A stretch of DNA of 64,000 bases. Origin: Paramoeba atlantica (Eukaryota; Protista; Discosea). The position numbers were made by a program, and so were the translations under genes. The stretch spans positions 62,001 through 126,000 of the forward strand of contig CDRNVI010000137.1 in the NCBI GenBank assembly GCA_977017575.1, given 5' to 3'. The notes under the pieces were generated by a model. The model had not been told where the DNA came from and searched no databases. It saw only the letters and a program-made list of their open reading frames with translations. Shown here piece after piece: positions 15,195 through 15,236 of the stretch (the stretch's first letter is position 1; the number at the start of each line of letters is the position of its first letter).

Positions 15195-15236
15195 ACGTAA
15201 GTTCAGTCATGGATAGAGCTACAGAGACTCTTAATC

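Follow-up and report, generated by a model that had tools for sequence, protein, structure and literature searches.

The elements Ty1 and Ty3 possess bipartite primer sites, which are used with the intact 3′ end of tRNA-iMet. To our knowledge, biochemical proof of priming by a truncated tRNA exists for tRNA-iMet only, namely in copia and Ty5. For these two elements, anticodon-loop priming with tRNA-iMet is treated as established in PMC10886601 (its references 37 and 38). A truncated primer has also been predicted from sequence for tRNA-Arg(UCU) (PMC4139406), and among plant elements a half tRNA-Ile has been assigned to the Bianca lineage and a half tRNA-Met to Osser, Bryco and Gymco-II (PMC6317226). 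For the Copia families of Puccinia, and for the non-autonomous elements partnered with them, the predicted primers are tRNA-Tyr, -Ile, -Asp and -iMet, each matched at its anticodon loop; tRNA-Lys appears in that study only as the 3′-end primer of Gypsy-type elements (PMC10886601). We describe here a Ty1/copia element, together with a set of other LTR elements, for which the predicted primer is a truncated tRNA-Lys(CUU).

The element occupies 10209-15455 on the minus strand of a 64-kb window (the whole stretch of DNA that was analysed, C137:62001-126000 in an assembly of 45.7 Mb and 248 contigs) and is 5,247 bp long. Its LTRs form a direct repeat pair, which was aligned and refined, with the 5′ LTR (TGTTGG...CCAACA) at 15237-15455 and the 3′ LTR at 10209-10427, both 219 bp in length and on the minus strand. 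A length of 234 bp given by the repeat-finder output was discarded in favor of 219 bp after the refined alignment. The two LTRs show 96.3% identity, and all of the differences between them (8/8) are transitions. A 5-bp target-site duplication, CAAAT on the plus strand and ATTTG on the element strand, is present at 10204-10208 (downstream copy) and 15456-15460 (upstream copy), and the polypurine tract GGATGGAGGAGAG, the plus-strand primer, abuts the 3′ LTR on its upstream side (10428-10440, minus strand). The interior is filled by a gag-pol region broken by stops (10451-15194, minus strand), within which Pfam matches on the same strand identify gag (14001-15194, Retrotran_gag_2), the Pol beta-barrel domain of the protease (13341-13952), the integrase core (12561-13229) and the RT (11505-12440, RVT_2), along with an RNase H-side remnant. 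The TG...CA LTR pair, the 5-bp duplication, the polypurine tract and the order gag, protease, integrase, RT with an RVT_2-type RT are those of a Ty1/copia element (Pseudoviridae). With stops interrupting its coding region, the window copy is a dead element of this kind, i.e., a decayed relic whose primer site is the one that worked at the time of insertion.

The borders of the element were confirmed independently by its exact empty site, a precise joint from 10203 to 15456 with 5 shared letters, which was observed in assembled contigs of two public runs (X2 and X4). The same joint indicates that the insertion is absent from some haplotype, strain or paralogous copy. Less-decayed copies are also present in public-run contigs (five runs matched, all of them assembled contigs and none recorded as RNA), which yielded neither transcript ends nor a primer junction.

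The core primer-binding site (15225-15236, minus strand) abuts the last base of the 5′ LTR. On the element strand it reads GATTAAGAGTCT, and the plus-strand word, AGACTCTTAATC, was verified by script to equal nt 29-40 of tRNA-Lys(CUU), so that the exact complementarity claimed in an earlier note on this DNA is correct. The same word lies within the tRNA-Lys(CUU) gene of the window, at 43782-43793, and a search of the whole window allowing up to 1 mismatch found it at these 2 places only, versus 0.44 expected by chance. Across the junction the element strand reads ...CCTCCAACA / GATTAAGAGTCT CTGT AGCTCTATCCATGACTGAACTTACG T ATG, the ATG being that of gag; the 12-mer begins at base 1 after the LTR, which ends in ...CCAACA. 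Because the start of minus-strand synthesis sets the LTR end, the 3′ end of the primer must pair at this junction. No TGG is found in the 42 nt between the 5′ LTR and the gag ATG in the window family, the first one being formed by the gag ATG-G itself, which bears out the earlier claim that a TGG/CCA-type site is lacking inside the 5′ LTR; with no TGG preceding the gag ATG, the CCA end of a tRNA cannot prime here. The site that abuts the LTR has no complementarity to a tRNA 3′ CCA end and instead complements an anticodon stem-loop, which places the primer end on the 3′ side of that stem, within the range expected of half-tRNA primers (about nt 39-41). The complement extends over 12 nt in the window family and 14 nt in the other families described below, ending at nt 40 in both cases.

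A second part of the primer site follows at 15196-15224 (minus strand), where an insertion, CTGT (15221-15224), precedes a 25-nt stretch (15196-15220) that is complementary, with gaps, to tRNA-Lys nt 6-28, i.e., to the D arm and the beginning of the anticodon stem. The alignment of this D-arm box scored 20 in the window element, as opposed to 5.1 ± 2.7 in shuffles (p = 0.001), and the looser D-arm similarity noticed earlier is therefore real by this measure. Taken together, the two parts amount, on the antisense strand of the element, to a worn copy of almost the entire 5′ part of tRNA-Lys. An Rfam scan of 15100-15350 at E ≤ 10 returned noise only and no tRNA match, because a gapped, antisense half-tRNA falls under the detection of the model.

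The tRNA-Lys(CUU) gene of the window (43749-43821, minus strand, found by ARAGORN) belongs to a set of 28 genes genome-wide with the same anticodon arm, and the primer fragment (nt 1-40 or 1-41) is predicted to derive from its transcript. Its nt 27-40 read CTAGACTCTTAATC and its nt 41 is T, as determined by script. In a comparison of anchored pairing among 12 tRNAs, tRNA-Lys(CUU) was the only one with a run of 12-14 nt, giving a primer end at nt 40, whereas the next-best tRNA, Asn(GUU), reached 6 anchored pairs and differs in its anticodon; no tRNA 3′ end fits the site. In the RF00005 tRNA inventory, 63 of the 3,406 candidates were scored, and other tRNAs were excluded via exact-word searches. 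The 14-mer fits the tRNA-Lys genes on C137 and above, which have the stem CTAGA, but does not fit the tRNA-Lys(CTT) gene on C53, which has the stem CCAGA. All of the LTRs here end in A, which is able to pair with U41, so a primer ending at either C40 or U41 would fit; two environmental elements read CA-A-GATTAAG at the junction of LTR and site. A stop at a modified G26 was considered as the cause of the sharp 14-nt limit, as no family here has a C opposite G26; however, the environmental loci L043, L047 and L048 do have one, so the idea is not general and was set aside.

Several observations on the tRNA genes and their distribution are recorded here in their own right. Three sites (C140:48469-48484, C140:89098-89113 and C160:9602-9617) carry CAGATTAAAAGTCTAG, a version of the lysine site altered at the base that faces anticodon position 34, and seem adapted to a UUU anticodon; the assembly yielded no tRNA gene combining a TTT anticodon with the CTAGA stem at up to 2 mismatches. 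The copia elements with the lysine site and the 28 tRNA-Lys genes with the CTAGA stem are all located on contigs C137 and above, and the contigs below C137 carry the other tRNA-Lys(CTT) (stem CCAGA, C53) and tRNA-Lys(TTT) genes (C26, C59). The assembly may hold two genomes or compartments. On C53 (locus L037, C53:214590-224589), nine tRNA genes for Glu, Pro, Arg, Ser, Arg, Pro, Lys, Gln and Asn crowd the two strands of a stretch of about 1.05 kb (L037:7755-8801). Scored tRNA matches were one-stranded per contig, all on the plus strand on C149 and all on the minus strand on C143.

Copies of the window family (family H) were located by a DNA search of the whole assembly, and its junction of LTR and site was found on C152, C201, C179 and C193. 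The junction sequence on C152 is identical to that of the window, and a 3′ LTR on C152 has the 3′ flank of the window copy; the C152 copy was thus taken as a duplicate of the window insertion. The insertion with the same flank occurs on C152 and again at C137:153360. The 12-mer and the downstream box are kept in all window-family copies, 4 of which are independent, with a few transitions nearby. The proposed check of conservation across family copies therefore found none that lacks the 12-mer. This invariance is weak support, since the copies are only 2-5% divergent and most were found by the word itself. A conservation statistic, with 0 of 68 site columns variable versus 54 of 332 flank columns, was set aside for the same reason, namely that the copies were ascertained by the word.

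More informative is the distribution of the site among families. The exact 12-mer occurs 57 times genome-wide, versus 5 times for a reversed control. When these occurrences were sorted by tRNA-model matches, locus reading and a 16-mer search, 28 were assigned to tRNA-Lys(CUU) genes with this anticodon arm, 1 to the variant tRNA-Lys gene on C53 and 27 to positions directly after an LTR-like end (CA or TA), leaving 1 on C41 unexplained. The junction sites fall into at least seven further groups whose LTR ends and leaders are unrelated, yet all of which carry GATTAAGAGTCTAG, the complement of nt 27-40. At least four copia families beyond that of the window are represented (families A, B, C and D, all copia by RVT_2), as well as two non-coding LTR families (F and G), which lack long frames and appear to be non-autonomous. 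In families A, B, C and F, both the LTR pair and the 5-bp duplication could be confirmed. Relative to family A, the RT-RNase H region shows identities of 64% for D, 60% for B, 30% for the window family and 26% for C, and values of 26-64% indicate that the lysine site is common across very deep divergence. The site is thus kept across divergent families while its flanks differ. This sharing across families is the valid part of the conservation test, whereas the part within families is partly circular, because copies were located via the site word.

One of these families contains an element in far better condition than the window copy. This copy, which belongs to family A and lies on C219, has a pair of 401-bp LTRs with 100% identity, the duplication GGAAA and an open gag-pol of 1,682 aa, in which Pfam finds the copia domain order and an RVT_2-type RT. 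The identical LTRs and the open frame indicate that an element with the lysine site moved recently. Decayed sites, with 1-2 changes, lie upstream of the RT matches at C154:40233 and C155:62524 and at several other loci. By our own reading, the site accompanies about 19 of the 34 RVT_2 matches, spaced and oriented as expected, and a pattern search found no such site at the RVT_2 loci on C158, C188, C230 and C187 or at C207:21981. The best-scoring RVT_2 locus of the genome, C158:63315-64016, is located between two opposite-facing tRNA-Lys(CUU) genes (C158:58654-66370).

A downstream block, GCTCT..CC..CTGAG, which complements the D arm, is found in all families, with shuffle p values from 0.001 to 0.28, so that the D-arm box is individually significant in some families only, and the families are not independent of one another. 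Two further loci deserve mention. At L028 (C226:6760-16759), the 14-mer follows ...GTTTA on the minus strand, and the sequence downstream is a non-LTR element with endonuclease/exonuclease/phosphatase, RVT_1 and RNase H domains and no copia proteins; either a nested insertion or an element of a different kind could account for this. A family B insertion occurs twice with identical flanks and the duplication ATCAT, at L020 (C144:395860-405859) and L021 (C144:426460-436459), and the inverted arrangement of the two, about 30 kb apart, indicates an inverted segmental duplication.

Relatives outside this genome were sought by a word-index protein search with the RT-RNase H region of family A and by a metagenome scan with an alignment of the clade. 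The protein search found no match closer than 39% identity. The lysine site was observed on six contigs from public metagenomes and other assemblies (L041, L043, L047, L048, L049 and L090), in each case directly upstream of gag or after an LTR-like end. L041 has the 14-mer, with the gag ATG following after 4 nt. In L043, 16 nt of the complement of the tRNA 5′ half are followed by one extra base and then by 10 nt more, and in L047, 15 nt of the site follow ...CTAACA. The site reads GATTAAGAGTCTTG in both L048 and L049 and GATTAAGAGTCGTG in L090, a locus from assembly PJEL01, which is cited by a paper on foraminiferal denitrification (PMC6783311) and from which we draw no taxonomic conclusion. 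Among L048, L049 and L090, the part of the site opposite the loop is constant and the part opposite the stem is different, as would be expected if each element followed the tRNA-Lys stem of its own host; no tRNA genes are present within the environmental loci themselves.

Three other relatives, L044, L045 and L046, with RT identities of 34-35%, carry GGTTATG(A/G)GCC, which is the site for the anticodon arm of tRNA-iMet. In L046, this iMet site directly follows ACA, which places the primer end at nt 40, in the same register as the lysine site. In maximum-likelihood RT trees, in which rows containing stops were read with X and which contain no reference copia or Ty5, the window family together with A, B, D, L047, P0003 and P0004 falls into a single clade (support 100/99). 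A second group consists of L048 and L049, family C sits on a long branch and the backbone is unresolved; the iMet-site relatives L044-L046 are not part of the main lysine clade. In L040 (P0001), which is a clade member, the sequence after the LTR is not the lysine site and was matched to no tRNA. At this locus (L040:1877-2640, JGI contig Ga0535650_0009292), which is close to family A, the homologous LTR end ...GTCGACTGATCA is followed by TACTCGATCGGGCAG.

The anatomy of the element, the exact complementarity of its site, the fixed position of that site and its sharing across families and assemblies all point to one reading, namely that a truncated tRNA-Lys(CUU), rather than the 3′ CCA end of a tRNA, primes the minus strand from here, and we consider this highly probable. 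Cleavage of the tRNA would fall on the 3′ side of the anticodon stem, behind nt 40 or perhaps nt 41, and the 5′ fragment released in this way would pair through its 3′ end with the 12 bases that follow the LTR (in the other families, with 14). Its D-arm portion would pair with the second, imperfect box a few bases downstream, and the reverse transcriptase would then extend the fragment into U5-R to give minus-strand strong-stop DNA. Overall, this would be the mechanism of copia and Ty5 (hemivirus type), with a lysine tRNA replacing the initiator methionine tRNA. The cut in the tRNA, its exact position (nt 40 or 41) and the priming itself are predicted features of this scheme. The earlier suggestion of half-tRNA-Lys priming thereby gains support from the at least four additional copia families and two non-coding families that carry the site, as well as from the six outside contigs and from iMet-site relatives in the same register.

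In several families no more than 17-100 nt separate the site from the gag start downstream of it, a location that would also suit a role other than priming, in which the 14-mer binds tRNA-Lys(CUU) or a fragment of it for packaging, for control of gag translation or as a target of tRNA-fragment silencing, the true primer being something else. We judge such a role unlikely. The site always starts at base 1 or 2 after the LTR end, as the start of the minus strand dictates, and there is no alternative primer site in the form of either a TGG or a self-complement. Moreover, relatives carry at the same place and in the same register the iMet half-primer site, which is experimentally established for Ty5 and copia according to PMC10886601.

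Self-priming of the Tf1 type, in which the transcript supplies its own primer through cleavage of a 5′ end folded back onto the site, has been proposed for some plant copia lineages (PMC6317226). Here it is excluded by the LTR sequences, in which the best complement of the 14-mer has 5-6 mismatches, equal to that in shuffles (seven LTRs from five families); in addition, a site common to unrelated LTRs fits a shared cellular RNA and not the element's own 5′ end, so we regard self-priming as very improbable. Conventional priming by the 3′ CCA of a full-length tRNA is the commonest mode among LTR elements (PMC8515867), but at a shifted or degenerate site here it too is excluded and retains hardly any likelihood, as there is no TGG in the first 42 nt in the window family and none within 60 nt in the other families, and a more distant site would lengthen U5, which the LTR pair and the duplication rule out. 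A chance likeness, a tRNA gene fragment or a tRNA-derived SINE at the insertion site, for which only the brevity of the window copy's match (12 nt) speaks, has a negligible probability, since the site is internal, lies in the interval between LTR and gag in copies at different loci with different duplications, would match anywhere in about 50 tRNA species as a position-fixed 12-mer with a chance of about 2e-4 by our arithmetic, and recurs as the same word at 27 LTR junctions.

Returning to priming by a truncated tRNA-Lys(CUU), we favor with moderate confidence the broader reading that an old copia clade, represented both here and in several eukaryote assemblies that are environmental or poorly studied, exchanged tRNA-iMet for a 40-41-nt fragment of tRNA-Lys(CUU), and that its two-part site tracks the tRNA stem of the host. 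If this is true, the hosts must make a tRNA-Lys fragment that is cut inside the anticodon stem. Ordinary stress-induced tRNA halves are cut in the anticodon loop and would not explain the cut that is needed here.

A clade relying on an abundant elongator tRNA would offer a second natural system in which to ask what selects and cuts the primer, on a scale of 28 tRNA-Lys(CUU) gene copies and at least five very different copia families with the site. For annotators, the site provides a concrete primer-site motif of a kind that standard LTR tools, which seek tRNA 3′ ends, miss, and the shared site links the non-coding families F and G to their likely autonomous partners. The earlier note did not recognize lysine as a described primer, and our full-text search with the site sequence and the concept indeed found no description of a truncated tRNA-Lys primer, although this search covered few subscription papers and Repbase reports and is weak in that respect. 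The novelty is nonetheless smaller than the note implied, with truncated Arg(UCU), Ile, Tyr and Asp primers already in print (PMC4139406, PMC6317226, PMC10886601). As primers from the anticodon arms of tRNAs other than iMet have already been predicted in fungi and plants, the advance is incremental.

Compared with copia and Ty5, the elements described here share the Ty1/copia gene order, the 5-bp duplication, a site that abuts the LTR without a TGG, the complement of an anticodon stem-loop and a primer end located on the 3′ side of that stem. We note two differences. First, the primer of copia and Ty5 is the initiator methionine tRNA, whereas here it would be an elongator, tRNA-Lys(CUU). Second, their fragment has been demonstrated biochemically, according to PMC10886601, whereas the one proposed here is predicted from sequence. 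The tRNA-Arg(UCU) case (PMC4139406) is similar in that an internal region of a non-initiator tRNA is involved and in that the homology is long or short depending on the family, with a core of 12-14 nt here and, with gaps, a reach of up to nt 6-40; it differs in the tRNA and in the host group, and both cases are predictions.

The plant Bianca lineage and the Puccinia families likewise have truncated-tRNA sites that are characteristic of lineages within Copia and that were read from complementarity directly after the LTR, and there, too, the site of autonomous elements recurs in their non-autonomous LTR partners, a situation mirrored here by families F and G. However, lysine is absent from the truncated tRNAs given for them (PMC6317226, PMC10886601). 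Ty1 and Ty3 resemble the present elements in having a short core site and extra boxes complementary to other arms of the same tRNA, but here the extra box would pair with the D arm of a tRNA that is predicted to be truncated. What these comparisons describe is thus a new tRNA species for a known mechanism, rather than a new mechanism.
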